DNA of 64,000 nucleotides from Lepidodermella squamata. Taxonomy: Eukaryota > Animalia > Gastrotricha. Shown here piece by piece: positions 4,857 to 63,402 of this stretch (position 1 is the first letter of the stretch; every line of letters starts with the position of its first letter). Below the pieces are notes generated by a model. The model was given only the letters and a program-made list of their open reading frames with translations, had not been told where the DNA came from and searched no databases. The stretch is taken from positions 2,170,001-2,234,000 of the forward strand of contig JBLDXI010000007.1 of assembly GCA_047495785.1 (NCBI GenBank). Reading direction: 5' to 3'. Both the position numbers and the translations under genes were made by a program.

Positions 4857-7848
4857 ATGGCGCGATATTTTCGGCTCGTTTACACGTTTAGCCTGTTCCG
4901 CGTGCTGTGGGGTGCGTGGGGGGACGAGGTTACGGCAAATTTTGAATTCAATAATGCGGACCCGAATGTACCATCGATAAACATGACAATGTACAAGGGT
5001 ACTTTCGATGGCTTTTCACCGGGTCAGCCACCTGCAACACCGTGGCCCTTGCCTATCCCATATACATTCAACAATGGCACCTGGTATTATTATAGCCCCG
5101 GCTTTTTAGATGTCTGTATGTTAATCTTCGTTACCATTTCCGAAAAAATTAATGATGACCCCATCATTTTTTATTATCAGCCCCAGTTGACAGACAGGTT
5201 TACAAGCTGGCCATAGCGTATATTGAATCGGTTACTTGTTTGCGCTTTGTGGAACGATCATCCATCGGTTGGAATGAGCCTAACTCGATCTTCTTCATAG
5301 GAGGGCTTGGGTGAGTTTCGTTTTCTGAGCTGCGATTTCAAACACTCATCTGCCGTTTGTATTACGCTTATAGAGACACAAGCGGCTATCATTCAACGAC
5401 TTATCCTTTGAGGGTTATCTCAATCAATAACCACGTCGACTGGGACGATTATTATTACGCGGTGAGTTTCAGTCTTCTTCCGTCGTATTATTAGAGCGAA
5501 ATCATTCGGATTAGGTGCCTAGCGCGATTAGAAAGATTGGCTACGCCCTTGGACTTACATATGAGTACAGACGGCCCGATCGGGATCAATATGTCGTTCC
5601 TTTCCCAGGCTATGAGAACAGGTTAAAAATCTCAAATTTATTACAAAAACAAAGGAATTTTCTGTTCTATCAGTTTCCCCATCAACCCGGCGCAAACTTA
5701 CTACAATGCAACGCCGTTCGACTATGAGTCACTGTTCAATCCGGCGATGATAGGACGAGGCCAGCTATTGCTTCCGGACAGGTACCCGATCGATCGGCGT
5801 TATGTTGCATCTGTTGGCCAGTCTGCATGGATGTCGTTGCTCGACACGATTAAGCTGAACACACTGTACAAGTGCTTTGGTGAGTAAATTAAATGTCAAA
5901 TCGTTGGGACGCAAATCAAACATTTCCTTAAATATAAATCGAGCCTATAATGGTTGTAGCGCAATACATTAAAATGCAATTATTCGTGATTTATTTCGCA
6001 GATCCGGCTCCGTGCAAAAACCCGGCAATTTCATGCAAAAATGGGGGCTATCCTAATCCGAGTGTCAACTGCACAAAATGCGTGTGTCCGGCTGGCCTCA
6101 GCGGTGATTTTTGCGACATTCCATATCCGACGGATCCGGCGAACGGTTGTTCCGGCGAAATCTACGTCCCGCCTTGTACTAAAGTTGATATTGCTAGCCC
6201 TAGCAATCGAAATTCGAGCTGTTCATGGATTGTTAAAACAGTAGGAATGTTTTCCGTGTCAAACTTGCTACTATTTATTCCGCTAGGGTAATACAAGCGG
6301 ACTAGTGTTTGGTTTCCCCGAATGGCCATGGCTGGATTATTACAGTCAGTAATAGTTTTAACAACCTGGAAACTACATTCTCTCGCAAAATATTTTCAAG
6401 GTACTGTGGATTGTCTGAACTTTGTTCTCATTAGAGACCTTGGACCCGAGGGTTATCCCGGATTCAGGTAACTTTGGCTACGGCAGAGCAATTTGCGTTT
6501 ACTTGAGTTTTGGTATTGTAAAGGTTCTGCAGGATCAACGCCATTTTCGGTCGCGTTTTCGTGACAAACAAGAATCAAGCCTTACTGCTCTTCAACCTTC
6601 CTAAGCCAGGCCAGAGCGCCAAAGTCACAGTTTACGCAACGTGTCCAGGCGTGAAAGCGACCGAATTGAACCGTGAATGCGCAATCACCCAGAACTTGTT
6701 CGACTACGAAGGCTCTCTATCGAAAACCATTACGGGTGAAACATGCGCGCGCTGGAATAACACTAATTCCCTTCGTTACTTTTGGGTTCCGAGAGGCGAT
6801 TTTACTGGGGCTGGAAATGCTTGCAGAAGTTCAGCGTCCTCTGATTTGCATTGCGTGAATTCTAACGGCGGCTTTGTCCAATGCCAAGGCGCTGACAAAG
6901 TCAAAAGCTGCAGTAAGTTGAGGGCATGATTTATTTCATCAATTCATCAAGCTTTTTCTTAATGACCTTGATTTGATTTAATTTGATTTCTTCAATAAAT
7001 CACCGGTCACTTCTAATCAAATCACCAACAATGGAAAAATGGCTTAAATCACAATCATCAAATCAAATTCTCTGATTTTTCTATCACTGTAAAAGACGAG
7101 GAAACCTCCAACCTTTTTCCAAGTTACCCTCAAATTGAACGTTTTGCCCAAACGCTAACGACCAGTCGAAAATTTCGCTTTTGTTAATTCGATGATAGCG
7201 AAATTGGCTGTCCGTTGCATCAATGCTAAAACTGGACAATTCGAAGCCTGTAGGCCGTACTGCCCTGAGGGCGAAACTCCGTTCAAGGAATGGACCACTC
7301 GTTATACCGACACCTGTGAAAAAGGCGTGAGTTGATTTTCTTATTGCTTGTAAATCCTACCTAAAATTTCATGTTGCAGAACGTAAGAAAATGCGTCAGC
7401 GGCTCAACTTTCCGATGCATTGCTGGCGACCAAGGCTGCCTGGCAAATGAGACAAAAATCGTAAGGAATTACAATCTAAAATATAATTTTAACGCGTTGC
7501 TAAACTCTTTTAGTCGCCACTGTTCAATACTTTCGCGTATTTTGGTCGCAATCTCCTCGCTTGCAACCATCGAGCCGATCTCAATTGGGTACGTCTCGTT
7601 CTAAATTTCGGAAATGCCTCATTGTTAGAGTCTCGTGCTCGCAGAAATATGTTCGCTGTTATCGGAATGCTCCGAACAAGCCGTTTGCCGACTGTCGACG
7701 TGCCGATATCGGCTGCCGTGCACCATCCGAGGTTATTTTTTCGCCGGTGAAGGCTTGAGACTAAGACTAAAGAATTTCTCTTTTTCAGGTTTCCGATGGC
7801 AAGTCGCCACCGTACTCGGATCCCTACCAATGCTATCAAGGAGTTTAG
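4857..7848 (+). CDS. Copy A: secreted catalytically inactive astacin-like/EGF/CUB/kringle protein, 657 aa, 14 exons
   Basis: Exons 4857-5115, 5181-5310, 5374-5461, 5515-5621, 5674-5879, 6002-6240, 6287-6344, 6401-6467, 6524-6912, 7199-7326, 7380-7460, 7514-7588, 7645-7731, 7789-7848 (1974 nt, all phases consistent). Astacin landmarks WPLPIPY, AIAYIESVTCLRFVER, RKIGYALGLTYEYRRPDRDQYV, FDYESLF, LNTLYKC; EGF CKNGGYPNPSVNCTKCVCPAGLSGDFC; CUB CSGEI...CSWIV...DCLNFV...FRFC; kringle ECAITQNLFDYEGSLSKTITGETCARW...NACR. Confidence 0.88.
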
Positions 7849-8417
7849 CTGAAAAGCACGATGTTGCGCTTAATTCTACGGAGCGGACTTATTCTCAGCC
7901 TAATCAACTACATACTGATAAATCATTAGAAAATTGCGACATGATTTATTTGACCATCCATACACTATTTTGAATTAAAGCCAATCTACTGTTGAGAAAT
8001 CAGCATGCCACGTTGGTGGACTTGAAGCGAATATAGGAATTATATTGATGCATGTTATTTTTCTTTGTGGAATCAAACCATAGATAAATAAATATCTTGT
8101 AGTTGTAGTTCGTCAAGCTAGCTGCTAATATTTTTGTTGTCAACACACTTTCGAAGACAGCAGTCGGTCATCATAATGAGTGTTAAATGGGCTAGAATGA
8201 GGCGTGAATAACGCACTGACTGCAGTGGTTTCAAATCATCCATATCACTCAAATCGCGAGCCGTCGCTGCACAAATTTGAAAACCTCCCAACGCTGCCCT
8301 AAATCTGCACAAAGATCGCGAGAAACGTCAGGAGATAAGCACGTTCATCGGTCAAGAAATTTCAGCTGGAGTTCGCCAGGCGTAGCCTAAAATCGGCGAT
8401 CGGCGGTTATTTAGTCA

Positions 8418-8769
8418 GTTTTTTTTATTTACCGCGGGGCCGTGGCCCGGGTTTTCGGAGGCGCTTCTGATGGTGGGGCACTTCCTCCTAGACAGATGCC
8501 TGCTGTCCCCCATTGCTCGCCGCTGGTTTTGGGGCGGGGCGGGGGAAGTGATGATGGGTCACTGCACACGTGTAACCTACGCCCGCCCCATCGCGAGCCT
8601 CAAGCAAGTGTTTCAACTTGTACTCGAATACCGTAATTTTGTTTAATCCAGCGACTTCGGTCGGCCGCTGTCGTGATGACAAATTCTTGTGCAGACGCGG
8701 GCGTTGAACCCGTGCCTCACTAGAACCACACTAGCATACCCTATGCTAGTCGCCTAATTTATTTATTTA
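8418..8769 (-). mobile_element. tRNA-derived SINE with 12-bp TSD
   Basis: Direct repeats GTTATTTAGTCA at 8406-8417 and 8770-8781. T-run at the left end is the A-tail on the minus strand; the minus-strand head has A-box-like TAGCATAGGG and B-box GGTTCAACGCC. Confidence 0.65.
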
Positions 8770-10172: not shown

Positions 10173-10848
10173 ATGGATGTTTCAGACAAAAAACGTTTAT
10201 GAAATATCTCCATTTTATCAACTTGAAATCGGCAAAGACAAAGTGGGAAACTCGCGAGGAGAAAATCGCCAAACCTAGCAAGAAGTCTATCGATCAAATT
10301 TTGATAGTCCATAATTTCAGCAGCCCTTAAAAGGAAAAATTACGAAATTTGCCCCTTTAGATTAAGGTGGCTGGATCTATCGATTAGTCATTGTTTATAA
10401 CAAGATACAAGATTTTGGAGCCTTCTATCCCACTATAATACCAATCGATGGCCTGTTTTCAATTCGATCTTCTTTAAAGATTAGAAGAACTTAATCGCAC
10501 ACCTAGAAAAGAGGTCATATTGCTAAATGCTAAATGTCGGGGTTTTGTTGAAATAACATCATCTGGCGCGTATTTATTTTATCGCACATCGCACGACTCC
10601 CCTTTTTGTTTTTCATGATTTTAAAAAATTATCCGCCTTTTTTCTAGTGTCTCGCGAATGAGGGCGCAGTAGCCAGTTCGAAAAAAGTTGAATCACGCTT
10701 GACGCTCGTGCCAGGAAGAGCGCGTGCCCTTTGCAATATCAAAACATATTTTGGTTTTGAGACCAAAAGCCTCAATAGTTATACATCAGTTCTCGAATTT
10801 CTCCAACCGGCTTAGAGTTATTTAACTGCGAGTATGAATAAGAATTCG

Positions 10849-13800
10849 ATGGCGCGATATTTTCGGCTCGTTTACACGTTTAGCCTGTTCCGCGTGCTGT
10901 GGGGCCTGAATGGGCAAGAGACAGCAAAAATTTACTTATTCAATAATGCGGACCCGAACGTACCGCCGATAAACATAACAATGTTTCAGGATACTTTCGA
11001 TGGTTATTCACCGGGTCAGCCACCTGCAACACCGTGGCCCTTGCCTATCCCCTACACATTCAACAATGGAACCTGGTACACTTTTAGGCCCGGCGGCTTA
11101 AATGTTTGTAAGTTGATCCGTGTTATAATTCCTGGAAACTACAGATAGATTGTTTCATTAGCTCCGATTGAGAGACAGGTTTACAAGCAGGCCATAGCGT
11201 ATATTGAATCGGTTACTTGTTTGCGCTTTGTGGAACGATCATCCATCGGTCTGAACGAGCCTAACTCGATCCTCTTCATAGGAGGGTTTGGGTGAGTTTG
11301 GGTTCTATTCTTATCTTAAAAAGCTGCGATCCTCATCTCTGCCGTTCGTATTATACGATAGAGACACATATGGCTATCATTCAACTGATCTTCCTTTGAG
11401 GGTTGTCGCAAACTACAACAACGCTGGCTACAGGGATTTTGTTTACGCGGCAAGTTTCAGTCTTCATATTTCCCGCCGTATTATTCGAGCGATATCATTG
11501 TGATCAGGTGCCCAACGCAATTAGAAAGATTGGCTACGTCCTTGGCCTGACATATGAGTACAGACGGCCTGATCGGGATCAATACGTCGTTCCTCTGCGA
11601 GGCTACGAGAACAGGTTCAAATTCTCGAATTCTGGTTATCAAATAATAAGAAACAATTTTCTGTTTCCTCAGTTTCCCCATTAACCCGGCCCAAACTTAC
11701 TACAACGCAACGCCATTCGACTATGAGTCACTGTTCAATCCGGCGATGATAGGGCGATATGGGCTATTGCTTCCTGACAGGTACCCGATCGATCGGCGTT
11801 ATGTGGCCAGTGTTGGCCAGTCTGCCTGGATGTCATTGTTCGACACGATCAAGCTGAACACACTGTACAAGTGCTTTGGTGGGTGAATTAACTGTCAGAT
11901 CTTTGGGACTCGTATCAATAAGTAGCTCCTTCGATTAAAATCGAGCCTCTATAATAATCGCAGCGCAAATCTTTACTTTTAAAATGCATTTCTCCATGAA
12001 TTGTTTGCAGATTCGGCCCCCTGCAAAAGCCCGACAATCTCATGCAAAAATGGAGGCTATCCTAATCCGAGCGCCAACTGCTCGAAATGCGTGTGTCCGG
12101 CTGGCCTCAGTGGTGATTTTTGCGACATTCCATATCCGACGGATCCGGCGAACGGTTGTTCCGGCGAAATCTACGTCCCGCCTTGCACTAAAGTTGATAT
12201 TGCTAGCCCTAGCAATCGTAATTCGAGCTGTTCATGGATTGTTAAAACGGTAGAAATATTTTCCGTGTCAAATTTACTGCTACTTTTTGCCGCTAGGCTA
12301 ATACGAGCGGACTAGTGTTTGGTTTCCCGGAATGGCCAATGCTGGAGGGATACAGTAAGTGATTATACCAGTTTTACTTGAGACAACATTTACTTGCATA
12401 AAATTTTCTAGATTATTTGGATTGTCTGAACTTTATTCTCATTAGAGATCTAGGACCCGAGGGTTATCCCGGATTCAGGTAACGTTGGCTACGACAGAGC
12501 AATGGATTTGGGTTTACTTGAGTTTTGGTGTTGTGAAAATTAGGTTCTGCAGGATCAACGCAGTTTTGGGACGCGTTTTCGTGACGAACAAGAATCAAGC
12601 CTTACTGCTCTTCAACCTTCCTATGCCAGGCGAGAGCGCCACAGTCACAGTTTACGCAACGTGTCCAGGCGTGAAAGCGACCGAATTGAACCGTGAATGT
12701 GCAATCACCCAGAACTTGTTCGACTACGAAGGCTCTCTATCGAAAACCACTACGGGTGAAACATGCGCACGCTGGAATAGCACTGATTCACTTTATCACT
12801 ACTGGGTACCGAGAGGCGACTTCAATGCGGCTGGAAATGCATGCAGAAGTTCAGCGTCCACCGATTTGCATTGCTTGAATGCTAACGGCGGCTTTGTCCA
12901 ATGCCAAGGCGCTGACAAAGTCAAAAGCTGCAGTAAGTTGAGGGCTCCATTTATTTCTTCAAACGTTTTCTATCACTGCAAAAGACGGGTATAACTCTCC
13001 TCTAACTGTAATTCCAAGCTACCATCAAATTGAGAGTTTCGTGGAAATGCTATTGACCGATGGAATAGTTCACCAAGCGATTGAGCTATTCGCTTATTTA
13101 GAAGAAGTATGATAGAAATATTTCTAGAAGTTGGTCAAAATCGAAATGGAAGTCGTATTTTGTTTTTTGTTCATTCGTAAAATTAGGAAGAAATTCAAAT
13201 TTCTGAAAACCTACTTTAAATATTCGCTGAATCGATGTCGAACTATCTATTCGATTATAGCTAAATTGGCTGTCCGTTGCATCAATGCTAAAACTGGACA
13301 ATTCGAAGCCTGTAGGCCGTACTGCCCTGAGGGCGAAACTCCGTTCAAGGAATGGACCACTCGTTATACCGACACCTGTGACAAAGGCGTGAGTTAATTT
13401 TCTAATTGCTGATAGATCCTACATAGTTTTATGTTGCAGAACGTAAGAAAATGCGTCAGCGGCTCAACTTTCCGATGCATTGCTGGCGACCAAGGCTGCC
13501 TGGCAAATGAGACAAAAATCGTACGGAATTTTAATCCAAAATCAAGTTTTATCACGTTGCAAAACTCTTTTAGTCGCCACTGTTTAATACTTTCGCATAT
13601 TTTGGTCGCAATCTCCTCGCTTGCAACCATCGAGCTGATCTCAATTGGGTACGTCTCGTTCTAAATTTCGGAAATGCCTCATTGTTAGAGTCTCGTGCTC
13701 GCAGAAATATGTTCGCTGTTATCGGAATGCTCCGAACAAGCCGTTTGTCGACTGTCGACGTGCCGATTTCGGTTGCCGTGCACCATCCGAGGTTATTTTT

Positions 13801-13902
13801 TCGCCGGTGAAAGCTGGAGACTAAAACATTTCTCTTTTTCAGGTTTCCGATGGCAAGTCGCCCCCGTACTCTGATCCCTACCAATGCTATCAAGGTGTTT
13901 AG
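10849..13902 (+). CDS. Copy B: pseudo-astacin/EGF/CUB/kringle protein, 14 exons, apparently intact
   Basis: Colinear with copy A. Motif RKIGYVLGLTYEYRRPDRDQYV; intron 3 has a GC donor (GCG|gcaagt); ends CYQGV-TAG. Confidence 0.85.
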
Positions 13903-29636: not shown

Positions 29637-32600
29637 ATGTCGCGATATTTTGCGCTTGTTTACACGTTCAGCATGTTCCGCGTGATGTGGAGCATTTTCC
29701 TCCAAAGCGAAGTTACACAAATTTTATTATTCCAAAATACGGACCCGAACGTACCATCGGTTAATTTGACAATGCACGCGAGTACTTTTGATGGCTTTTC
29801 ACCGGGTCAGCCACCTGCAACACCGTGGCCCTTGCCTATCCCATATACATTCAACAATGGGACCTGGTATATTGATCCGCCCGGCAATTCTGACGTCTGT
29901 AAGTTAATCTGTGTTACCATAAATGTATGAAAAAATTGATGTATTGTATGATTGATTAGCTCCGCTTGAGAGACAGGTTTACAAGCAGGCCATAGCTTAC
30001 ATTGAATCAGTTACCTGTTTGCGCTTTGTGGAAAGATCGTCCATCGGTTTGAATGAGCCCAACTCGATCCTCTTCATAGGAAATCTTGGGTGAGTTTTGT
30101 TTCCTAACCTGCGATTCAAAAAAAACCTATCTGCCATTTGTATTGCGCGTATATAGAGATTCAAGCGGCTATCATTCAACTTCTTATCCTTTGAGAGTTG
30201 TCGCAATTAACAGCAAGCCGAAAAGTACGGATTTTATTTACGCAGCAAGTTTCAATCTTTTATTATAACCGTGGTATTATTTGAGTAAAATCATTTGGAT
30301 TATAGGTCCCTGCCGCGATCAGGAAGATTGGCTATGCCCTTGGACTTACATATGAGCTCAGACGGCCAGATCGTGGTCAATACCTCGTTCCTTCTCCTGG
30401 TTACGAGGACATGTTAAAATTCTCAAAGCAAGGAATTTTCTGTTTTATCAGTTTCCCAACCAACCCGGCGCAAACTTACTACAACGCAACGCCCTTCGAC
30501 CATGAGTCGCTCTTCAACCCGGCGATGGGAGGAGTAGATGGGATAAGGCTTCCCAGGATGTACCCGATTGATCGGCGCTACGTGGCTTCTGTGGGTCAGT
30601 CTGCCTGGCTGTCGTTGTTCGACACGATCAAGCTGAACACGCTATACAAGTGCTTTGGTGAGCAAACTATTTTCTCAATATCATAAATCGATATTGTAGC
30701 CTGTAATTTCTAATTTCTAAAATCGTAGAGCACAATACTTACAGCTTGTCCCAAAGAAGTTGTACAGCCATTTGACCGTTAACAATGAAAAATGGGGTTT
30801 GGCGACATTTTTTGTCATTGTAAGATTTTTAGCGCTAAAATCTTAGGTGAGGAATCTTGCTAGATGTTCGAAAATTCCAAAATATTCGGCCACCTCATCC
30901 AGGTACACTATTAGCATAAGTTTGGTATCGTTTGATTCGTCTTAAAAAGTTCAATTTAAAAACCGCCTTTTCTGCTTCACCTGTGAGCTTTTCCTTGGCG
31001 ACGTGATGCTTGAAACTCTGGTGTTTATAGTACCGGAGAGGGGTACAATTTTGAGAGTTAAAGTCGCTCTAGGGTGCCATAAATCTGCATAGAAACTCCC
31101 TAATACAACTCCCTGGTTTGCTTGGCGTGAACAAAATCTACGTCACGCTCGGCGAATCGGGTAATCAGAGATTTTTATTTTATCATTTTTCTTCGTCTCT
31201 GTACACGTACTCAATTTTTATTTTTATGTTTTTGTTGATTAATGAATGGAAAGATAAAATAAAGAAAATACTATGATATGCTAATAACTGAGCCAACCTC
31301 ATAATTTAAAAATAAATGCGCAAGTGATACAAAATTTATCTAAATTTAATGCTCAAATGGGATGTGCGCAAGTGGGGGTAGTTCTCATTGTTTGCGTTAC
31401 TTATAATTATGGGACACGCTGTATTATACGCAAAATGAATGTCTCGGTGTATTATTTTGACAGACTCAGCTCCGTGCAAAAACCCGACAATCACATGCAA
31501 AAATGGGGGTTATCCTAATCCGAGCGTCAACTGCACAAAATGCTTGTGCCCGCCTGGCCTTGGCGGCGATTTTTGCGACATTTCATACCCGACGGATCCG
31601 GCAAACGGCTGTGTCGGCGAAATTTACGTCCCGCCTTGTACTACAATTGATATTGCTAGCCCTAGCAATCAAAATTCGAGCTGTTCATGGATTGTTAAAA
31701 CAGTAGGAATATTTTCCGTGTCAAACTTACTGCTACTTTTCGCTGCTAGGGTAACACAAGCGGACTAGTGTTTGGTCTCCCCGAACGGCCAGGAGGACTG
31801 GAATATTTATGTCAGTGATTGTACCTGCTTTACTTGAAACAACCACGCATAATATTTTCTAGATGGTTTAGATTGTCTGAACTTTATTCTCATCCGAGAT
31901 CTAGGACCCGAGGGTTATCCTGGATTCAGGTAACGTTGGCTGCGACAGAGCGACGTGCAGTTGAAGCTTTGCATTGCCAAATTTAGGTTCTGCGTGGTCA
32001 CCCCATTTTCCGGACGCGCTTTCATGACAAACAAGAATCAAGTCCTGGTGTACTTCAACCTCCCTAAACCAGGCGGGAGCGCCACAGTCACAGTTTACGC
32101 AACTTGTCCAGGCGTAAAAGCGACCGAACTGAACCGGGAATGCGCAATCACGAAGAACTTGGTCGACTACGAAGGCTCGCTTTCGAAAACAACAACGGGC
32201 GAAACTTGTTCACGGTGGAATACCACGAATTCAGTTCAATTCTTTATGGTACCGAGAGGCGATTTCGATGCTGCTGGAAATGCGTGCAGAAGTTCAGGTT
32301 ACACTGGTTTGCAGTGCCTGGATTCTAGTGGCGCCTTTGCCGAATGCCAAGGCGTTGACAGCGTCAAAAGCTGTAGTAAGTTGAGGACACGATTTCTTTC
32401 TTTCAACTTTTGCTGTAAGACCTGCAACGCAGACGCGGCATTCTTCCGCAGCAAATCGGCTTCATATAGCAACATAATTCAATAATCACTAAAGTTTCGG
32501 TACAAATCTCTTTTTTGCGGTAATTATTTTACCGCGGAGCGCTACAATAATTCGCGTGGGTTTGTACCAGCGAATCGAGAGTTATTCCGCATTCGCAAAA

Positions 32601-33803
32601 TGTTTGAAAATATCAGAAAAACGATTTTTCTATCAAAATTGAGCCAGAAAATGTGTTGTTTCCAAAATTAGAAAGGCAATTCAAAGTTGAGTTATGTATT
32701 AAGTTAAGTTCTAATTAAGTTATGTATAAAACATTATTAAAATTTAAAACTAAAATTATTTAAAAATTATTATGGGAAAATCGTACGGCAATACCAAATT
32801 TCGTTTAATTAAATACCTAACCAATTTTTATTCGGTTATTAAACGGGTTAGGGTTAGGGATTTTACCAAGTTCGAAATTAGGGCCCTTCCTATTCACATA
32901 TGATCATTTTCAAGTGGCTTTTTGTTTTCAATCCAAAATCTAGTCCGCTGGGATTTCTTCAACGTTTCTAGCTCGAATTGTTTCGGTTGCTTGATCAAGA
33001 GGTTCAGTTCGCATTTCGAAAAGTATGACAGGAATTTTTCTTCAGGCAATTGTTGTTCGAAACCGAGGGCTTGTCTGTTCTTTACACAAGTATATCTATT
33101 CCAATTCGAAAAATCTACTTTCATCTGCTGATATGAATATATTTATTCGCTAGCTAAATTGGTTTATCGATGCATCAATACGAAAACTGGGCAATTCGAA
33201 GCTTGTAGGCCGTACTGCCGTGAAGGCGAAACTCCGTTCAAGGAATGGAAAGCTCGTTACACGGACACCTGTGACAAAGGCGTGAGTTCTTTTTCTAATT
33301 GCTAGCAAAGCCTACCTAGTTTCATTTTGCAGAACGTGAGAAAATGCGTCAGCGGCTCAACTTTCCGATGCATTGCTGGCGACCAAGGCTGCCTGGCAAA
33401 TGAGACAAAAATCGTAAGGAAATTTTATCTGAAAATCAAACTTTATCGCTTTGCAACAATTTCTTAGTCGCCGCTGTACAATGGTTTCGCGTATTTTGGT
33501 CGCAATCTCCTCGCCTGCAACCATCGAGCTGACCTTAATTGGGTATGTCACGTACTAAATTTCGGAATTGCCCTAATATTTTACGGTTTCGCGCTTGCAG
33601 AAATACGTTCGCTGCTATCGGAATGCTCCAAACAAGCCGTTTGTCGATTGCCGACGCGCCGATTTCGGCTGCCGCGCGCCATCCGAGGTTGTTTTTGCCG
33701 CGGTGAAGGCTGAAGACTAAACTAGAAACTTTTATAATTTCAGGTCTCCGATGGCCAGTCACCGCCGTACTCGGATCCTAACCAATGCTACCAAGGTGTT
33801 TAG
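29637..33803 (+). CDS. Copy D: pseudo-astacin/EGF/CUB/kringle protein, 14 exons, apparently intact
   Basis: Colinear with A. Motif RKIGYALGLTYELRRPDRGQY; GC donor at intron 3; 39-nt intron 4 (30413-30451); introns 5 and 9 enlarged by repeat insertions. Confidence 0.83.
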
Positions 33804-35480: not shown

Positions 35481-35519
35481 TACAATGGCGCACTGAGAAC
35501 AATAGCGGGTCATTGTTGT

Positions 35520-36252: not shown

Positions 36253-36366
36253 AAAAAGATCAAAAATATATTTATTACTTATTTAACACACTCGGTTATA
36301 TTTTGGTCTCGGTTGTCGGGTCTCAGTTGTCGTAGAACCAATAACCAATTCGAAAAACTGGTTTTA

Positions 36367-47808: not shown

Positions 47809-49762
47809 ACTCAGCTCCGTGCAAAAACCCGGCAATCACATGCAAAAATGGGGGTTATCCTAATCCCAGCGTCAACTGCACAAAATGTTTGTGTCCGCCT
47901 GGCCTCGGCGGCGATTTTTGCGACATTTCATACCCGACGGATCCGGCAAACGGCTGTGTCGGCGAAATCTACGTCCCGCCTTGTACTACCGTTGATATCG
48001 CTAGCCCTAGCAATCAAAATTCGAGCTGTTCATGGATTGTTAAGACAGTAGGAATATTTTCCGTGTAAAACTTACTGCTACTTTTAGCTGCTAGGGTAAC
48101 ACAAGCGGACTAGTGTTTGGTTTCCTCGAACGGCCAGGACGACTGGAATATTACTGTCAGTGATTATACCAGATTTACTGAAAGCAAAATTTCCACACAT
48201 AATATTCTCCAGATCAGTTGGATTGTCTGAACTTTATTCTCATCAGAGATCTAGGACCCGAGGGTTATCCTGGATTCAGGTAACGTTGGCTGCGACAGAG
48301 CAACGTGCAGTTGAAGCTTTGCATTGTCAAATTTAGGTTCTGCCTGGTCACCCCATTTTCCGGACGCGCTTTCGTGACAAACAAGAATCAAGCCTTGGTG
48401 TTCTTCAACCTCCCTAAACCAGGCGGAAGCGCCACAGTCACAGTTTACGCAACGTGTCCAGGCGTAAAAGCGACCGAATTGAACCGGGAATGCGCAATCA
48501 CGAAGAACTTGGTCGACTATGAAGGCTCTCTTTCGAAAACAACTACTGGCGAATCTTGTTCGCGGTGGAATACCACGAATTCAGTTCGATACTATATGGT
48601 ACCTAGAGGCGATTTCGATGCTGCTGGAAATGCGTGCAGAAGTTCAGGTTACACTGGTTTGCAGTGCCTGGATTCTAGTGGCGCCTATGCCGAGTGCCAA
48701 GGCGTTGACAGCGTCAAAAGCTGTAGTAAGTTGAGGACACTATTTATTGTTTCTAACTTTTGCTATAATATCTGCAACGCAGACTGCAAGGCTGGGGTTT
48801 TTACCAAGTTCGAAATTAGTGCTCTTGCTATTCGCGAATGAACATTTCCAAGCAAAAAAAATTGGCTACGTTTTCAGAACCCCGTTTTCTTGTTTTTAAA
48901 TCCAAAATCTAGTCAGCTGGCATTTCCCTAACGTTTCTAGCTCGAATTATTTCGGTTGCTTGATCAAGAGTTCGCATTTCGGAAAAGTATGACAGACATT
49001 TTCCTTCAGGCAATGGTTGTTCGAATCCGAGGGCTTGACTGTTCTTAACACTAGAAATTCCAACTTGGAAAATCTACTTTCATCTGCTGATATGAGTTTA
49101 TTTATTCGCTAGCTAAATTGGTTTATCGATGCATCAATACGAAAACTGGGCAATTCGAAGCCTGCAGGCCGTACTGCCGTGAAGGCGAAACTCCGTTCAA
49201 GGAATGGAAAGCTCGTTATACGGACACCTGTGACAAAGGCGTGAGTTGATTTTCTTATTGCTAACAATCCCACCTAAAATGTCGTGTTTCAGAACGTAAG
49301 AAAATGCGTCAGCGGCTCAACTTTCCGATGCATTGCCGGCGATCAAGGCTGCCTGGCTAATGAGACAAAAATCGTAAGGAATTTTTATCTGAAAATCAAA
49401 CTTTATCGCTTAGCAACAATTTCTTAGTCGCCGCTGTTCAATGGTTTCGCGTATTTCGGTCGCAATCTCCTCGCCTGCAACCATCGAGCTGACCTTAATT
49501 GGGTACGTCTCGTACTAAATTTCGGAATTGCCTAAATAATTTTACGGTTTCGCGCTTGCAGAAATACGTTCGCTGTTATCGAAATGCTCCAAACAAGCCG
49601 TTTGTCGATTGTCGACGCGCCGATTTCGGCTGCCGCGCGCCATCCGAGGTTTTTTAGCCGTTGAAGGCTGAAGACTAAGCTAGAAACTTTTGTATTTTTC
49701 AGGTTTCCGATGGCCAGTCGCCGCCGTACTCGGATCCTAACCAATGCTACCAAGGTGTTTAG
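47809..49762 (+). pseudogene. Copy E: exons 6-14 only; promoter present but exons 1-5 replaced by repeat DNA
   Basis: D-like upstream sequence stops at 45190 and D-like intron 5 resumes at ~47490. The remaining EGF, CUB, kringle and tail exons have open frames and splice sites. Confidence 0.8.
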
Positions 49763-50489
49763 CTAAAACGCGGAACTTTGCTCAACTCCAAGTCGCGGAC
49801 CTGCTCATCCTAATTTACTTTGATGAAAATGTTTGAGAAACTTGCATTATAAATAATATCTTTCTCAAGTTTTGATCGCCTGTTATCTATATTTTTGCTC
49901 GAAGACTATTCCACTATTTAGAAATTGGTAGAACATAGTGGTATAAGCTTAAAAAGTTAATGTTGATGCATGTGATTTTTTCTTCGCGGACTAAAACCAT
50001 AAATAAATAAGGTTGCATATACAGCTCAGACAAATTTCAATCGGAAATAGTTTTCTTTCTCGCTATAGCATACCGACTAGCGATTGAGACGATCACGCGC
50101 TTTGAGCGTAAAAATTCCTGTTATTTTTTCAACGCTTTAGATTTGTTGCGGCAAGCTTTGGCTCATAATTGTACAGTTTGCTTTTCTGAAAATCGAATTT
50201 TAAATAGATTTTCCACAATCAAATAATTATTATAAAGTGTGCGCAAGCATTTTTTGCCTCGCACTTTTCAACCTTAAGTGATGCGCTGTTTTGACGCAGT
50301 TTTGAGCGAATTGAAGACCAGGTGTGGTCTGATTATTCCCTAAGAGCTTGTTTCAAAAAGATGTACCTCAAATAAGTTGTGCAAGAAATGCGTTTCGCCA
50401 TTTTTCATACTTTTTTCATTTTTGAAAAATGGAATTTTTGCATCCGATGTGGCCTGAGTTGATTGTATCTCTCGCCAGGTTTTGTTGAC

Positions 50490-53400
50490 GCACATTTCCG
50501 GGCCCGCCTATGTTTCGTCCGGGCGCGCGCACTGGTTGGCCGGCTGTTTCGACCAATGAGAGCGCGTAATCAGACCGCAGGCGCGCTGTTACGCCCTGCT
50601 CGATTGCGCGCGAGTATAATTACACACTTCACGGCCGCGCAGGCGAGGCCGCGCGGCAGTCGCGGTCGCAGTCTCGGCTGAATTTTTGGCGCAAAATTCA
50701 AATTCAAATTTTGGCGCCAATTTTGAGGTGAAAGAAAATTCAAAAGGAAAATTCGTCATTACTCGTGAATCGTGCTATAATATTGTTCAATAATGACTAA
50801 ACGCATTGCTGATCTGCCGCCTGACGTCGAGGCTATCTTGCCTGACGATGAACACCGTCTTCTTCACATCGTCACTAAATTCGAGCGGAAGAATGAGTCA
50901 TCGTGGATTCTGCATTTTCGAGCGCCTTTCAAGTCAAACGAATGGGGCAGGTTTTTGGCCGGTGTACAGCGTCGCAGTCGAGTTGATTTCAAAGCTAAGC
51001 CACACGGAACGACGAAACCTAAAGGCATCAAATTCATCGCGAAGGAAGAGCTTGTGTGTAATCACGCTGACCACGAGAGCGGTGTACACGACTCGCGCAG
51101 AAAATGCGCCGCGCCCGGCGAAAAGGCGAAAAAACGGCAAGTCACCTCAAGCGGCGCTGCTCCGAAAAGCAAAATAACCGATTGTACCGCATCGATCTCG
51201 CTTTCAGAAGTCGCACCACTGATCGACGACGGCACGCCAAAAAGTCGCGACGCAGCTCGAAAACGGCTGAGACGCGACCCGCTGATTACTTCGCACCCTA
51301 CCATCGTCCAAATCGAGTGGCAGCATGACCATAATATTGGAGTCTTGGCTGCGTTAAGGTGGCGAAATCACGCCGAGGGCGTTGATACGGCAATGTTTCG
51401 CCATCTACAAGCCGAAGGTACAGCATCTGCAGCAATGCAAGCTTATAATAATGAGCTGGAGGAGCTGTATCCGGAAATACCCTGGTTGCAGCTGTCGGCT
51501 GATCGCTCGCTCTGCCCAACGCGCAAAGATTGGTACCACTTCGCCGATAAATTACAAGTAAGCACACACGGCGATCGTAATGGAGAGTTAATGCGGTCGA
51601 AATTGAAGGAGTTAGCTGCGCAGCACTCGGAAACGTTTAGTTATCGCGAGACACTGGCGAAAAACGGCGAGCGGGTCTGGTGCTTGTTAGTTCGAACCCC
51701 GATGATGCGCCGTGTTTACGACACCGTTTCTGAAGCTCGGGACATCCTTTTTACCGATTCAACCGCCAGCTGCGATCTTGTAAACAGCTCTCTGACTTTG
51801 ATAGTCAGCGCGTCATCAGCAGGCGCCTTGCCAGTAGCCGCCGCAATTCATTCATCGCAGACCGTCGATTGTTACAAGTAAGTTGAATGAATTTTATTTT
51901 ATTTTTTATATTATATTTTTAGACATTTTTTTTTTAAATTTTATCCGAATTTTTTAATTTTAAATTATATCAAATTAAATTTTAAATTAATCTGCTAAAA
52001 AAACTGAATTTTACGGCGGAACTATTGTGCATTTTGACGTAGGGGGGAAATTTGCCGATGTGAAAATTTCTCAACCATTTTTTTAACTTGGGGCAATAAT
52101 AAATTGATTTTTGTTATTTAATTCAATTTATTGTTTTTTTTTTAACAGACTGGCGTTTGGCATGTTCAAACAAACCTTGAACGGTGTTGAGCCAAAGCTG
52201 TTCTTAACAGACGACAGCGATGCAGAGCGGGAGGCTTTACGCCTTGTCTTTGTCAATTCCACTGTGTTGCTATGCGCATTTCATATTCTCCAAGCCCTGT
52301 GGCGGTGGCTGACGAATAAAAAGCACAACATCGCTGCCGAAGACGCGCCGCTTTTGCTTCAACGTAAGTTCGGGAAATATTTAACGCGATTGAATTTTAA
52401 TTAGTTTTTTTCGCAGTGTTCCAAAATGTTGTTTTTGCACAAACCGAAAAAGAGTACGAAGCTGCACGTGGCGCTTTGCTCTATTCGCCGCTTACTCGAA
52501 AATACATCAATTGGCGACTACACATCCTTGCCCACCTACAGCGTTCTCGCCTTTTCGTGGCTGCGTTTCGCAATTCCTACTCGCATGGTCACATGACCAA
52601 CAACATCGTCGAAAGGTGAGCCCTTTATTTCTATTTTATATGCAACAATTTTCAATTATTTTTGCTTCATTTCAGATGCGTTGGCATTTTAAAAGACGTG
52701 GTGTTATGCCGTGTTCGCGCCTTTAACCCTGTCGCGCTTGCGCAATTTTTGAGCGAAAAATTTGATAATTTTTTTGCGAAAAAACTTCTTGACTTTGCGA
52801 ACGGTCGCAATGATTTGAAAACGGAATGGCTGCGCTACAAAGACGCGGCAATCGTCGAAATCGCCCAGAAAAACAGCGAAATCCAAGCATTCGATGTCAC
52901 GACTGCGAAGGGTGATAATTATGTTGTAAATTTGGCGGCGTGGCTGTGCAGTTGTCCTTATGGTCGAAATGGCCGGTTTTGTAAACATTTGGTAAGTAAA
53001 AATTTGGTTATTTTAATTTATAAATTTTAATTTTATTTTGAAAATTTTCGGAATTTTTTTATATTTTTATTAAATTTTTCTACGCTCGAATTTGTATAAA
53101 TTTATGAGATTAATTTTAATTTTTTAATTTTTTTAATATTCGCTCAGGTTCATGTCGCTGCTGCTAACAATGTTGCGCTGCCTACAAGCCGCATGGTCGT
53201 TGGAACTCCCGACGTTAAGAAACTCTTGGCGTATATTGCTGTCGGAATTTATTACGACGATGAACTTTTTCTCGGCCTGACTGAGGTCAACACCAGCGCG
53301 AACGAGAACGCTGCATCGTGTTCAGCTTTTGTTAACGTACCACCGTCCAGTGGCCTCGAAATCGCCGATAATAGCGAAACCAATGCTATTACTATTGAGC

Positions 53401-54188
53401 AAGAAACCGACGAGAATGCGGGAGAAGAAAACGACGACGGAACGAAATTCGCCGAAGAGTCACTCGTTAATTTCAGGTCCATGTGCGCTAAAGTGGAACG
53501 TCTCATCGCTGAAAACAAGTCGAATGGCGGGCTTTTGAAGCAAATGAATAAATTCAGCCATCGGCTATCAACCCTCGCAGATACCGGTGTCATGGCGATT
53601 GAGTCTTGGCTCGCCAGGGCCTTGATGAAGTCAGGCGGACATAATCGCGGGGCGCTTATTCATGTGCAGAGTACCGCGGTCGGCCGGCGGATGTTTAACG
53701 TCGGTGGCTCCAGGCCACATCGCGCCGGAAGGAAACCAAATGGGTATCGAGCGCCGAAAAACTACGCCATTCGCCCAAGAAATTTTCGTGAGAGAAACGG
53801 CATTCCGCCCACTCAGTGACTTGAGATTATCTCGTTGTGAGCAATAATTTAAAATAATTTGAATTCTGATTCAGTCGTTTCATAATTTTTAAATCGATGT
53901 ATTTAATCGTTACTTGTTTATAGCGCTTTCCATGACATTTGTTGTAAGCACTCAGCTCTGAAAGTATTTGAAATTTAGTTCTGATGATTGTTGAAATGAA
54001 ATAATTGGAATAAAGTCCTGTTCTGTCTCGTTTATTTGAGTGTCGCGCGCGGCGTTATGCAATGCAAAATGCGAGTGTGCGAGCGAGCGGCGGGCGGCGG
54101 CGGCGTAATAACGCGGTCTCATTGGTCGAAACAGCCGGCCAACCAGTGCGCGCGCCCGGACGAAACATAGGCGGGCCCGGAAATGTGC
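50490..54188 (+). mobile_element. Autonomous Mutator-like (MULE) DNA transposon
   Basis: Identical 72-bp TIRs (50490-50561, 54117-54188) beginning GCACATTTCCGGGCCCGCC; perfect 9-bp TSD TTTGTTGAC (50481-50489, 54189-54197). Confidence 0.95.
50793..53819 (+). CDS. MULE transposase with SWIM zinc finger, 828 aa, 5 exons
   Basis: Exons 50793-51877, 52149-52363, 52417-52615, 52676-52991, 53148-53819 (2487 nt, open). DDE residues in LFTDST, LTDDSDAE and TNNIVER; CAFH (CxxH); SWIM CSCPYGRNGRFCKH. Confidence 0.92.
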
Positions 54189-54889
54189 TTTGTTGACAGA
54201 TGGTCTGTGATGGATCCAAATCACCGATTCCCGAAGCAAAAATTGCACGACTCTCCGAAACTCGAGGTTTCATTAAATTGGCACGGATCAATCAAAAATT
54301 CTGCAAAATCATTCCCGATCTCGGTTGGTGGATAAGACCTTTTCTGAGGGCGCTAATTCAAATTTCCCTGTTGACGGCGCGTTATTGACCCAATTCCCAA
54401 CTAAGAAAATTTTCCAATATAAAGCCGTTTCACAGGAGGATGCCAATCAACCTCAAATCCTGTAAAATGTCATTTTTTAAAAATAGGAATTTTCGAAAAA
54501 GTCGCGGATTGCATTTTGGTCATCAATGTTCTCTCTCGAATCCCATTATACCGAAAATTTGAGGGAAGATTACCCCACACTAGATCTATCGACGGGCGAA
54601 ACCCGCATTGAAAAATTCCTCATGGTTATGGAGTTATTCAAAAAATCGGGGCAAAAAAGTTTTACGCATCATTTTTATTCCCGTTTCCGCCCATTCTTGA
54701 TTTCCCAAAATATGTTACGAATTAAACAACATTTTCATCGAATGCGCCTCTTTATTACGAATCTACCAGTATAAAATTTGTTATCCGATTTCCGATTTTT
54801 TCAATACAATATAAACCTCGGAAAAACAGGAAAAACACCGGCCGCTTAATGCTCAACTTGAAACAGTAAATTAATCGGCGGTGTGAAGA

Positions 54890-57800
54890 CGATTATTGTG
54901 GCGCGCCCGGTCGGCGTCGCTCAAAAAACGAGTAACTGCGACAAATTTTGCAGCGGCCAATTTGAGGAGGAGGACGAGGATTTGTTGCCTCAACTGACGC
55001 CCGCCGTGCCGCCCTTTCGCTGCTCGAATTTCTGGTAGTGGCCGGGTGGTGCTCCGGATCAGGCAAGCCTTGACTGGCCAGGTACTGATGCAACTCCGTC
55101 GTGGGACTCGGCAACGACGAGCATGCGGGGCAGTCGGACTTTCGGCACCGGTTGAAGATGAGCAAACCGGAGCGGCTGAAAATTTGTAATATATTTCAAT
55201 TATTTCAAATATTAAAAATTTTAATATAGTTGAATGAAAAAAAATAACACGATAATAAATGCAGAAAACTTACTAATCAACGTGTTTATCGGCTAGAACG
55301 AGCTGTCGTAGAAGCCGCTTGTTAGTTTTCCGCCGTTGTTTGCTCGGCTTCTTTTCATTCACGAAGTCGGGCTCTTCCTGGGTGACGAGAAATTTGTCGA
55401 GACACGGGCGTTTTTCAGGCGTTTTTATTGGTGGTCTGCGTTACATAATTCATAGTAACATTGCCTTTAAGACACAGAGATATGAATAAATTAATTTCAG
55501 TATAGGTGATATTTCTTAATAATAAGTATTGGTTATTTATCGTTGGTTGGAATATAGATGGTGGTGAAGAATTCGAATTACTTATTTAACACACTAGTTT
55601 TTCGAATTTTATACGAGAAGCGAGAAAAAATCAGGCTCGAATTGCGCTCAAATCACGTATTTAAAAAATGAGGTGATAAGCTGTACCTTATTGCGGCAGC
55701 TGAAACCAGGTGCATAACGGCCCACCACCAGCGATTCCAGTTTGAGCTCCCTGAACAGCAGCCAGTAGAAATGCCGGTTGTTTGCATATTCGATGCGCCA
55801 ATCAGGCCCGGCGTCAACAAAGAGGACGAGGCATTGCGGGTGTTTGTTTTCAGCATTACATAAGTATAAAACATGCCGTAATATGTCGGACATGTGTTCT
55901 GCCATGCCGCAGTCATTGAAAAGTTTGCATCTGCAAACACGATAAAATTTAGAATTTTGTTTAATTGTGACGAATAAAATTGGTTTCCTATGGTACTATG
56001 AGCCATGTTATCGAAAATAATGTTTTTATAAAATCTTATTCTCAGTAAATTTATTAAATTAATATTTTTTCGGGTGTGATCGAAAGGAAAATTGCCCTAA
56101 TTTTTATTAAATTTATCTAATTTTGAGAAAACCTGAAAATTATTGCTGTTGCGTAACAAGTGAAATTACAGCGATGTATATGTGTCATTCTCAATTTCAT
56201 TCTCAATATTGAAAAATGAAGGCGAGACTTCAAGTTCCTTGACGAAACTTGAATTTCTCAGCGGCCTTCTTATTCAACATTTCGAAAAAAATTTAATTTC
56301 AAGGTTCTCCAAGTTATAGCCTTATTTCGTGCTCTAGAGCTTGAAACTATAATCGTAGTCTCAATTTTCGCTTCGCGTTGATCGGTTGATCGGTTCGCGA
56401 TGGGAAACAGAATGATAATAACGAGAAGAAGGGCAAGAGAGAAAGTGGCAAGAATTACACAAGAAATTCAAATTGTAATTCGATATCCTGGTATGAACCT
56501 CATCGCGGCGACTCCGGGAATCCATGTTTGGTGTCCCTCTTAACGCCTCTGAGTGATCCTTTGAGCTTTGAGCGAAGCTCATCGACGATTCCAGGCCGCG
56601 ATCATTAGCATTCGAATTGTCATCGAAGGCTTTTGGTATACTCAAAGGCTGCTTCGGAGTCATTCGCTACACATCTATTCTGCGTGCTTCATAATATTGC
56701 AACATCGCGAAACGAGCGTCTTGATAAAAACTTGATGAAAACCCAAGAGAAAGAAGGCTCGCATCGTTTTTCCCACTGATCAAGCGCGCTTAAGGGTAGT
56801 GCTTAGGTGATAGACAGGCTTTGCCCGTCGGCGTCAACTCGTCGAGTTTTTCGATGGAATTTTGACGAAATTGATTAGAATCAAGCTCGACTTCAATAAA
56901 CTTGATATGAATGCGTACATCACAAGTGCCTGATCAAACTTAGCGCGGTCCAAACCAGAAACTGTCTGGACCATGAGACGTAGTACGACAAGTACGATGT
57001 AGTACGTCTCATGGTCTGGACGAAAAATCAAATAAAATCGATGACCTGCCACGAGCAGCAGACATAGATTTAATTTGATTTTCGCCAGATTTTTGCCAGA
57101 TTTTGTCGTTTTCAGCCAAATTTTATTAAAATTTGACAAAAAATTGTCCTAAATGAGGTCAAACAGGAAATCTAAATAAATTTTAATAAATTGGACGCCG
57201 GTTTTGTTCAAACGTTATCGAATCTTAAATATTAAATGAAAATTTACCGAAAAACGGTGAAATTTTATTATTTTTTAGCTCAAAACGACAGAATGGTTCT
57301 ATATCAATTGAGCAAACGAAAATTGGGCAACGAAAATGGAGCAAAGGCTTTTGAGCAACGATATTAGAGCAAAACGACTTTTCGGCAAAATGAGATTACT
57401 GTAACGTGGTCTTATTTCGGACAAAAACCTGTTTTTCGGGCTTTGTTTTTTAAGATGAGCGAATTTTTTTACGCGATTTACGCCAAAAGATGCGCCTTGA
57501 AAAACAGCATATCCTAGCGTTAATCGCGGCAAAAATGTACCTAAACTGACGCAGGTATTCACAGGTAACTGACTCGGCTAATTTCGGACACAACTGGGGT
57601 AATTTCGGACAGCTCAGCGTGAATATTTAGATTAGGGTCAAAGTTCACATTAAAGCGAGATAATATTTGTGAGCAGATTTTAAAAGAAAAAAATAAATTG
57701 CATGTTGAGGGATTTGAACCCCCGATAGTGAATTGAGCTCTCAACGCAGCTCAGTGCTATTCTCACTAAAATATTAAAGTTTAAAAAATGTCAAGGTCGA

Positions 57801-61135: not shown

Positions 61136-61554
61136 CCGTATTTCATCAAATAATAGCCATGGCTACTATTTTTTCCGAAACTCCGAAAATGGTCCAAAAA
61201 AAGAGGCAATTATTCGAGGGGGCTATTATTCGAGGGGGGCTATTATTTATTGGCAATTGGCAAATTTCATCATCGCAAGTCGTTTGCGCTGTTGAATTAT
61301 CTGTTTTCTGACCCACGCTGCTAATTAATCCTCGACATCCCCTAACAACGGCTTACGGATTAAAGATTAAGGCGACGCAAGTAGGACAGCTTTTTCCCTC
61401 CTTCACCGCGCCACCTGCTTCGGACAAGGCATGACGTGGCTATTATTCGAGGGGGGCTATTATTTATTTTTAAATGCTCAAATTAGCCGAAAATTTCGGG
61501 CTATTATTCGAGGGGGCTTTTATTCGAGGGAGGCTATTAATCGATGAAATACGG
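61136..61554. mobile_element. Tc2-like MITE, TA TSD
   Basis: TA|CCGTATTTCATCAAATAATAGCC ... GGCTATTAATCGATGAAATACGG|TA; internal GGCTATTATTCGAGGG repeats. Confidence 0.8.
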
Positions 61555-62347
61555 TATTTAAATTTTTGGTCCAAAAAAGGTCCAAAGGAGTGTTTGATTG
61601 AGTGGAGAAGGGTTAATCAACACAGGCCTTAATATAAACACAGGTTAATTCCTCAGGCCTTGAAAATGTAACTTGGAAAAAATGAGCAAAAATTAACTCC
61701 CTGATATCAACTCAACTCAGTTCAAGATCACTTTTACTAGTTTTACTCAAGTCTGTCATCAATAAGTCATCAGTTGTTAGGCTCCAGCGGGCTGCGCGAC
61801 CTTTGCGACCTTTATGACATTAAATATAAACATTGGAGAACGTTTCAGGTAATATCAATTGGTGTTTCATTTGTGTTTATTCAGCGACGTTTGAAAGTAT
61901 AGATTATTTTAGATGGCTCTCTGCCGAAATTAGGACGATAAAATTCGATTTAATTTTCGGGAAAAATCAAATTTGTCACTTTTTCGACTTGCAGCAGCCG
62001 CCCTCTCGAGTAATGTTTAGCTGATTTGGATTATCGGTCAATTCTTGAACTATTGCTCTTTCAATGACTGATTTGAGATAATTTTTTTGATGATAATAAA
62101 AAAAATGTTGAAATGTTTTTTTCTAAAAGATTGAATTGAAAACAGGTTCGCGAGAAATAATGGCGGCGTAGTTGAGGCGGTTCGAATAAAAAATTAAATC
62201 ACGTGGGATGCTCGTGCCAGGAAGATCGCGCGCCCTTTACAATATCAACACATTTTTTTGATACCGAAAATCTCAATAATAATCACAATTATTTCACAAA
62301 TTTATCCTACCGGCTTAAATTTATTTTTACTGATTTACAAGAATTCG

Positions 62348-63402
62348 ATGTCGCGATATTTTGCGCTTGTTTACACGTTCAGCCTGTTCCGCGTGTTGTG
62401 GAGCGTTGACCTCTATTTCGAGAATACAAAAATTTACTTATTCCAAAATGCGGACCCGAACATTCCATCGATAAACGTGACACTGTATGAGGGTACTTTT
62501 GATGGCTTCTCACCGGGTCAGCCACCTGCAACACCGTGGCCCTTGCCTATCCCATATACATTCAACAATGGGACCTGGTATATTTATACGCCCGGCAATT
62601 CTGACGTCTGTAAGTTAATCTGTGTTACCATTAATGTATGAAACAATTGATGTATTGTATCATCATGATAAATTAGCTCCGCTTGACAGACAGGTTTACA
62701 AGCAGGCCATAGCTTATATCGAATCGGTTACCTGTTTGCGCTTTGTGGAAAGATCATCCATCGGTTTGAATGAGCCTAACTCGATCCTCTTCATAGGAAG
62801 ACTTGGGTGAGTTTTGTTTCCTAACCTGCGATATAAAAAACTTGTCTGCCATTTGTATTACGCGTATAGAGACCAAGCTGGCTATCATTCAACTTCTTAT
62901 CCTCTGAGGGTTGTCGCAATTAGCAGCGAAACTGGCAACGACAATTTCTTTTACGCAGCAAGTTTCAGGCTTCTTATTAACTCAATCATTTGAGCGAAAT
63001 CATTTGAGTTATAGGTGCCTGCCGCGATCAGGAAGATTGGCTATGCCCTTGGACTGACATATGAGCTCAGACGGCCAGATCGGGGTCAATACCTCGTTCC
63101 TTTTCCTGGCAACGAGAACATGTTCAAATTCTCAAATTATTAACAAAACAAGTAATTTTCTGTTTTTATCCGTCCCAGCCCCTTCCCCATCAACCCATTC
63201 CCCATCAACCCGGCGCAAACTTACTACAATGCAACGCCCTTCGACCATGAGTCGCTCTTCAACCCGGCGATGGGACGACTAGGTGGGATATGGCTTCCCA
63301 GGATGTACCCAATTGATCGGCGCTACGTGGCTTCTGTTGGCCAGTCTGCCTGGCTGTCATTGTTCGACACGATCAAGCTGAACACGCTATACAAGTGCTT
63401 TG
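62348..63402 (+). CDS. Copy F: pseudo-astacin exons 1-5 (3' part, if present, lies beyond the window)
   Basis: MSRYFALVYTFSLFRVLWS...RKIGYALGLTYELRRPDRGQY...LNTLYKCF with open frame; intron 5 begins GTGAGC at 63403. Confidence 0.8.

Follow-up and report, generated by a model that had tools for sequence, protein, structure and literature searches.

Organisation of the array

A stretch of 64,000 nucleotides (nt) from the gastrotrich Lepidodermella squamata (GenBank assembly GCA_047495785.1, contig JBLDXI010000007.1, positions 2,170,001 to 2,234,000 of the forward strand) was analysed; it is referred to here as the window, and positions are counted from its first letter. The window consists of animal DNA with approximately 41% G+C and, from 4.8 kb onward, was found to contain one gene that is repeated in tandem on the plus strand. 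The predicted product of this gene possesses an astacin-like domain in which the catalytic residues are replaced, and its copies differ mainly in five short blocks. Alignment of the copies resolved seven copies or fragments (A, B, C1, C2, D, E and F), all on the plus strand, in line with the figure of at least seven same-strand copies or fragments given by a first-pass annotation that had been made from the sequence alone. Every peptide quoted in that annotation was also located where it had been reported.

Three of the seven are full genes of 14 exons each, namely copy A (4842..7848), copy B (10834..13902) and copy D (29637..33803). Copy A comprises 1989 coding nt, equal to 662 codons plus the stop codon at 7846-7848; its exons are open, their phases are consistent and their sum is divisible by three. 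Copy D possesses a long intron 5 (806 nt). Copy F (62348..63402) is present as exons 1-5, the remainder, if present, lying past the end of the window; its intron 5 runs into transposon-like sequence, after which the window ends. The astacin-like parts of these four copies were found at 4842-5879 (A), 10834-11878 (B), 29637-30657 (D) and 62348-63402 (F).

The other three units are remnants, which were taken as they occur in the sequence. Copy E (47809..49762) consists of exons 6-14 only, all of them open, with other sequence lying where exons 1-5 would be expected. Remnant C1 (18714..19218) is an internally deleted copy, in which a piece of the exon 3/4 region is joined to a piece of exons 13-14. 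Remnant C2 (19595..23277) consists of upstream-like sequence fused to a 5’-truncated copy that is without the astacin part and carries an insertion of approximately 1 kb in its 3’ half.

Gene structure and splice sites

The 14-exon model was derived by aligning the copies. All acceptors were found to be AG and all donors GT, with the exception of a GC donor after exon 3 in copies B, D and F; phases are consistent and introns are mostly 39-65 nt in length. The GC donor starts at position 11450 in B, 30245 in D and 62958 in F (the first base of intron 3), the rest of the donor conforming to the consensus, and copy A has GT at this site. Intron 3 of these three copies has to be spliced as a GC-AG intron, there being no other donor in frame. 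The 32 Cys residues and eight N-glycosylation sequons of the predicted protein are conserved in their number per exon.

Individual copies were also observed to differ in the length of particular elements. Intron 4 of copy D (30413-30451), at 39 nt compared to 52-58 nt in A, B and F, is unusually short by animal standards. Exon 5 of copy F begins with an in-frame tandem duplication of 18 nt (63179-63197) that adds six residues, with the acceptor shifted upstream correspondingly. An arrangement with shared constant exons, of the type known from protocadherins, was considered for the array and rejected, as A, B and D were each found to have their own exons 6-14.

Domain architecture and homology

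Homology searches were run exon by exon, with the codon columns of separate exons being pooled for statistics only. The predicted protein consists, in order, of a leader, a pro-segment, an astacin-like domain, an EGF module, a cysteine-containing region, a kringle and a Cys-rich tail. The first-pass annotation had overlooked the EGF module, the kringle and the nearly invariant Cys-rich tail downstream.

In searches of the PDB, exon 2 matched the backing-helix region of TLL1 and BMP1, all of its matches being astacin-family catalytic domains, and exon 4 matched BMP1, TLL1, astacin and hatching enzymes at their active-site helix, all of its matches again belonging to the astacin family. The top PDB match of exon 5 was likewise to an astacin-family protein, and this exon aligns with the zebrafish hatching enzyme 3lqb over its 60 C-terminal residues. 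The Pfam Astacin profile was matched at profile positions 19-50, 84-105 and 126-188 with scores of 13.2, 16.2 and 21.3 bits respectively, each under the cut-off of 22.5 bits, and these matches are collinear. Homology to astacins, as originally proposed, is therefore supported by exons 2, 4 and 5 retrieving astacin catalytic domains in collinear order. Judged by its sequence, the domain is a homologue of astacin (M12A, PF01400), predicted to be non-catalytic.

The modules behind the domain were located in copy A, on the plus strand as are all features of this copy. A putative EGF-like module (exon 6, 6013..6114) was recognised by its six-Cys pattern and a weak match to Pfam EGF_2 (E 0.06). A kringle module (exon 9, 6675..6911) was identified by its six Cys and by matches to plasminogen/angiostatin (E 4e-8) and HGF (E 2e-4); Pfam Kringle (PF00051) was matched with E 0.008 and a score of 17 bits, under its cut-off. 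The Cys-rich tail (exons 10-14, 7199..7848) hardly varies between copies A, B, D and E and matches no known domain. The region between the EGF module and the kringle may be CUB-like, by a likeness of position and pattern that was noted by eye; no CUB match (PF00431) was listed by Pfam for exons 6 or 9 at E values of up to 10, exons 7 and 8 lying outside the scan.

Ahead of the astacin-like domain, a conserved FDG(F/Y)S stretch was found to resemble the FXGDI switch with its Asp changed to Phe or Tyr, a comparison made by eye and unaligned by tools. The protein is probably secreted and glycosylated.

Relatives of the family were sought in several collections. A search of 1.84 billion representative proteins with an exon-5 profile returned one spurious bacterial repeat protein only, while none were found by an exon-5 profile scan of metagenome contigs or when the open frame of exon 9 was run against a word index. 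Literature and domain searches yielded no description of such a family. The combination of an astacin-like domain with a kringle and a Cys-rich tail has no relatives in the very large protein collections searched.

Loss of the active site

The position of the zinc motif (5530..5562 in copy A) was determined by alignment to chains of BMP1, TLL1 and astacin, and is the same in B, D and F. Compared to the astacin motif HEXXHXXGXXH (alignment to BMP1 and astacin), the first His is replaced by Arg, the catalytic Glu by Lys and the second and third His by Tyr, with the Gly being kept, in all of A, B, D and F. The equivalent of the SIMHY-type Met-turn (5729..5743 in copy A) was identified by alignment to 3lqb; here Met is replaced by Phe, His by Asn and the Tyr ligand by Pro, again in all four copies. 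The description of the domain as a dead protease was thus corroborated, given that zinc ligands, catalytic Glu, Met-turn Met and Tyr are replaced in four copies in an identical manner. Since all four copies share these replacements, the catalytic residues were lost before the duplications.

Other features of the astacin domain were found to be kept. These include the Glu after the third ligand and the stabilising XXRXDRD motif that follows it, as defined in PMC9848320 (motif definitions were also taken from PMC6400186); they are kept in A and B, and the last Asp is Gly in D and F. The C42-C198 pair of crayfish astacin, its conserved outer disulfide, is matched in the alignments by a Cys of exon 2 and one with which exon 5 closes. 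The second disulfide (C64-C84 in crayfish astacin) cannot exist in these proteins, because exons 3 and 4 are without Cys. The protease fold is predicted to be retained as a scaffold that neither binds zinc nor hydrolyses peptides.

Five variable blocks

Amino-acid changes among A, B, D and F were found to be concentrated in five short blocks, the positions of which are given here for copy A. Block 1 (4914..4949) forms the start of the pro-segment, right after the hydrophobic leader, and block 2 (4977..5000) lies in the pro-segment right before the conserved FDG(F/Y)S stretch. Within the domain, block 3 (5088..5111) is situated between the first strand and the backing helix, block 4 (5417..5455), the most variable of the five, right before the active-site helix, and block 5 (5750..5782) right after the Met-turn equivalent.

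Positions that vary between A and B coincide with those that vary between D and F (counts of 23/24/15/198, odds ratio 12.7, p 1e-10). Furthermore, sites flagged by the site model described below adjoin each other in 16 pairs, compared to 6.2 expected (p < 2e-4, permutations). The clustering of differences is beyond chance. For the loop that reads KPKSTD/ETGNDN in D and F, a contrast with its surroundings had been claimed previously and was reproduced: 13/18 nt differ within the loop, compared to 9/57 in the upstream part of the same exon and 4/63 in intron 2, and the probability of 13 or more differences is 4e-7 at the neutral divergence of this pair (0.17). The framework around the blocks had been called almost invariant in the first-pass annotation. 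It is conserved, but not specially frozen, the values obtained being those of ordinary purifying selection among young paralogues (synonymous divergence (dS) 0.19-0.53, and a ratio of nonsynonymous to synonymous divergence (omega) of 0.25-0.30 outside the blocks).

Blocks 4 and 5 were mapped onto crayfish astacin by counting from anchors that had been aligned by tools, namely the position equivalent to H92 and the Met-turn. Block 5 corresponds to approximately residues 152-162, and block 4 to approximately the stretch that runs from strand 5 into the loop ahead of the active-site helix. In astacin, residues F154-W158, Q157-V160, Q76 and G83-C84 are among those that touch the cleft-bound inhibitor fetuin-B (PMC6400186), and in solved astacin zymogens the pro-segment runs along the cleft (PMC9848320). 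The cleft-lining location that had been ascribed to the variable segments is consequently supported for four of the five blocks, namely blocks 4 and 5, which fall on inhibitor-contact segments, and blocks 1 and 2, which belong to the pro-segment. The five blocks may surround the former substrate cleft.

Evolutionary rates and selection

Informative sites supported the tree ((A,B),(D,F)), with 85 sites in its favour compared to 10 and 7 for the alternatives, and the conflicting sites are unclustered. Synonymous divergence was found to be 0.27 for A-B, 0.19 for D-F and 0.39-0.53 between the pairs, in agreement with intron divergence (p 0.285 for A-B and 0.162 for D-F). Exons 1-5 have an overall omega of 0.32-0.47 and exons 6-14 one of 0.16-0.29, with a value of 0.16 for exons 6-14 of copy E compared to those of D. 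The scaffold is under purifying selection.

At the 5’ end of the genes a different degree of divergence was observed. Copies A and B differ at approximately 3% of positions in their 5’ flank and leader (4529-4895 and 10520-10887), compared to 28% in the introns, and between D and F the difference stays at 6-7% from the flank to the end of intron 2. This suggests that the 5’ region has been homogenised, with the homogenised part ending just before block 1. Large-scale conversion between the clades as the source of the framework was rejected, as one tree fits and no significant non-sister tracts were found save for one short run that is uncorrected for multiple testing.

To guard against circularity, blocks were defined on one sister pair and measured on the other. 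Nonsynonymous divergence inside the blocks was 0.44-0.48, compared to a synonymous divergence of 0.16-0.23 outside them. Nonsynonymous differences per site in the blocks, compared to all neutral sites, were 0.330 and 0.156 for D-F (p 3e-4) and 0.356 and 0.258 for A-B (p 0.03), and for the 5’ part of the D-F pair, where homogenisation is otherwise nearly complete, 0.316 and 0.079 (p 2e-5), with all of these p values coming from Fisher tests that are somewhat optimistic. The blocks thus change faster than neutral sites, by a factor of 1.4 to 2.1 and locally by one of 4. In block codons with an unchanged amino acid, synonymous change was not raised, which argues against a mutation hot spot or an older history of the blocks; a local hot spot was rejected as far as the data reach.

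Maximum-likelihood site models, written for this study, were then compared on the four copies. Model M2a was preferred to M1a with a likelihood ratio test (LRT) statistic of 29.9 (p 3e-7), placing 20% of sites at an omega of 3.2, and the LRT remained at 19.2 for the domain without leader and pro-segment. In the protein’s C-terminal half, essentially one site was flagged. Diversifying selection on the blocks is likely, although not proven. The claim of such selection in the first-pass annotation is upheld in so far as the blocks evolve faster than neutral sites and the plain model gives an omega of approximately 3, but the inference that omega exceeds 1 does not withstand the inclusion of multi-nucleotide changes.

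These results, along with those on the dead active site, are taken to indicate a young, lineage-restricted family of intact genes, in which a dead-astacin scaffold carries five blocks that differ between paralogues around the former cleft and are likely to be under diversifying selection; we hold this explanation with slightly better than even confidence. A number of points weigh against it. Once a codon may undergo double and triple changes, the plain selection model is outperformed even by the null model, and support for an omega above 1 weakens (LRT 5.83, p 0.054), which is why selection is graded here as likely and not as proven. Omega counted within the blocks alone is 0.8-1.1. The site models draw on four taxa only, and the optimism of the Fisher tests stems from within-codon differences not being independent events. 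Four of the five blocks lie in exons 1 and 3, which had no astacin match in PDB searches and are without detectable similarity to solved astacins, so that no tool placed these four blocks. The mapping of block 4 is approximate, because from the conserved Cys to the helix the domain exceeds astacin by approximately nine residues. Lastly, since the N-terminal leader is only moderately hydrophobic, secretion is given as probable.

Alternative explanations

The alternative that best survives these data is one of relaxed constraint only, where the loops that shaped the cleft and the latency peptide drift following the loss of catalysis, in a pseudo-protease of single function that is encoded by ordinary young duplicates, with the variable blocks being devoid of significance. 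The counted omega close to 1 inside the blocks and the survival, at the 0.05 level, of the null that allows multi-nucleotide changes are both what drift would produce. The absence of the second astacin disulfide, which ties the loop ahead of the helix, and the loss of detectable similarity to astacins in exon 3 are in keeping with it as well. However, drift should stay within intron and synonymous divergence, whereas the blocks exceed this 1.4- to 4-fold when defined on an independent pair. Free loops also usually vary in length, whereas indels in the blocks are almost nil, and the changes are radical ones, with the net charge of block 4 spanning -3 to +1 among the copies. Relaxed constraint by itself is for these reasons considered unlikely.

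A less probable alternative is short-tract replacement, in which blocks were swapped or rewritten in one step, either by micro-conversion from members outside the window or by template switching, and which would be compatible with selection. The saturation of the blocks would then stem from the way mutations arise and not from numerous point changes under selection. Short-tract replacement is suggested by the 13/18 nt that differ in the D/F loop beside an intron of 6% divergence, and by codons with two or three changes, which were found to be enriched in the blocks (10/36 and 15/40, compared to 5/224 and 9/220 outside); the estimated rate of double changes is high. In addition, the non-sister copies B and F share a run of eight polymorphic sites in block 1 (p 0.023, uncorrected), and homogenisation is present in the array, as seen in A and B at the 5’ flank and leader. 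On the other hand, a donor for any block is absent from the window, the site patterns back one tree with unclustered conflict, and the block codons that preserve their amino acid show no extra synonymous change. Short-tract replacement is accordingly regarded as quite improbable.

That the array is decaying, its copies being pseudogenes left by a burst of duplication, could be argued from 3/7 units being truncated or rearranged, from the GC donor that B, D and F need for splicing exon 3 and from the MULE-type transposon and 609-nt perfect inverted repeat that sit among the copies, but it is highly improbable, as A, B and D keep 14 open exons along with their splice signals, F keeps all five visible exons, and an omega well below 1 in every pair and region outside the blocks indicates that the copies are not pseudogenes.

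Other elements of the window

A perfect inverted repeat of 609 nt occupies positions 45191-46783, with arms at 45191-45799 and 46175-46783 that are 100% complementary and separated by a spacer of 375 nt. It begins exactly where the homology of copy E to copy D stops; possible origins are a foldback element, a palindromic rearrangement and an error of assembly. A MULE-type DNA transposon was identified at approximately 50229-54188 by MULE and SWIM matches, with inverted arms of 95 nt (50490-50584 and 54094-54188). Its transposase frame is broken into at least four separate open reading frames (ORFs), and for a transposase ORF one relative, 56% identical, was found in a Logan assembly, whereas an exact search for this ORF returned no match. 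MULE-like end sequence is also present in intron 5 of copy F (63423-63659).

The insertion in remnant C2 (21581-22651) contains a minus-strand ORF of 229 codons and a tandem repeat of 96 nt (2.1 copies, 99% matches), and is without a Pfam match. A dispersed repeat of approximately 450 nt with 91% identity is located at 35522-35968 and 54661-55103, and upstream of D and E there are further repeats, at 27.2-28.0 kb and 42.3-43.3 kb. Pfam searches on 20 ORFs between the array copies returned the MULE and SWIM matches only, and a search of Rfam found nothing. No part of the window had a human or viral appearance. Upstream of the array is an actin gene (1303-3112, plus strand) of two exons, with its intron after the Gly codon that closes the first exon; its protein is 93-97% identical to actins from many animal phyla.

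Proposed explanation

Tandem duplication has yielded paralogues that differ mainly in the five short blocks. In the favoured reading, that of a dead-astacin scaffold with variable blocks likely to be under diversifying selection, the constant body, consisting of scaffold, EGF module, kringle and tail, would bear a variable groove built from the walls of the former cleft, to which the pro-segment, if no longer released, could contribute. The groove of each paralogue would have a ligand preference of its own, with the kringle and tail engaging a common partner. The proteins might then be germline-encoded binding proteins, in which the dead-astacin cleft and the uncleaved pro-segment form the variable site and the kringle and invariant Cys-rich tail the constant part, that is, a pseudo-protease counterpart of recognition or decoy molecules with variable heads. 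This functional proposal is tentative, and doubtful at present; the analysis turned up no evidence specific to an immune, decoy or effector role.

In the array, cleft-lining loops and a latency peptide would vary on a fixed, dead metzincin scaffold. Pseudo-proteases are increasingly seen as binding and regulatory proteins and, if the proposal is true, these genes would provide a natural variant series for studying the conversion of a protease groove into a specific binding site.

Comparison with known systems

FREPs and 185/333 are tandemly expanded, fast-evolving, secreted recognition families of invertebrates. The array resembles them in its tandem duplication, in its short variable blocks within a conserved frame and in its arrangement of a variable head on a constant body, the likeness being one of pattern only.

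With astacins that carry EGF and CUB modules (BMP1/tolloid-like proteins and hatching enzymes), the array proteins share a homologous domain, preceded by a leader and pro-segment and followed by an EGF-like module. Also kept are the Glu next to the third ligand, the stabilising motif and the Cys pair that aligns with the outer disulfide. Unlike astacins, however, they are without zinc ligands, catalytic Glu, Met-turn Met and second disulfide, they carry a kringle and a Cys-rich tail, and the switch Asp is apparently aromatic when compared by eye. Astacin expansions have been described in parasitic worms and spider venoms, as active enzymes, in a 2023 review of astacins in which inactive members are not discussed (PMC9848320). 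Among the metallopeptidase pseudoenzymes named in a review from 2024, none belongs to the astacin family (PMC11266112).

A further likeness is to the ADAM pseudopeptidases (M12B; ADAM11, 22, 23 and others), where a metzincin domain also has substituted zinc ligands and general base. These proteins have been kept for protein-protein interaction via surface loops and typically retain the Met-turn (PMC11266112). They differ from the array proteins in belonging to another metzincin family and in the Met-turn, which is lost here; furthermore, the ADAMs are single conserved genes, whereas the array is tandem with fast-changing loops. The ADAM pseudopeptidases are the closest concept to the array described here, and the EGF- and CUB-bearing astacins its closest homologues.

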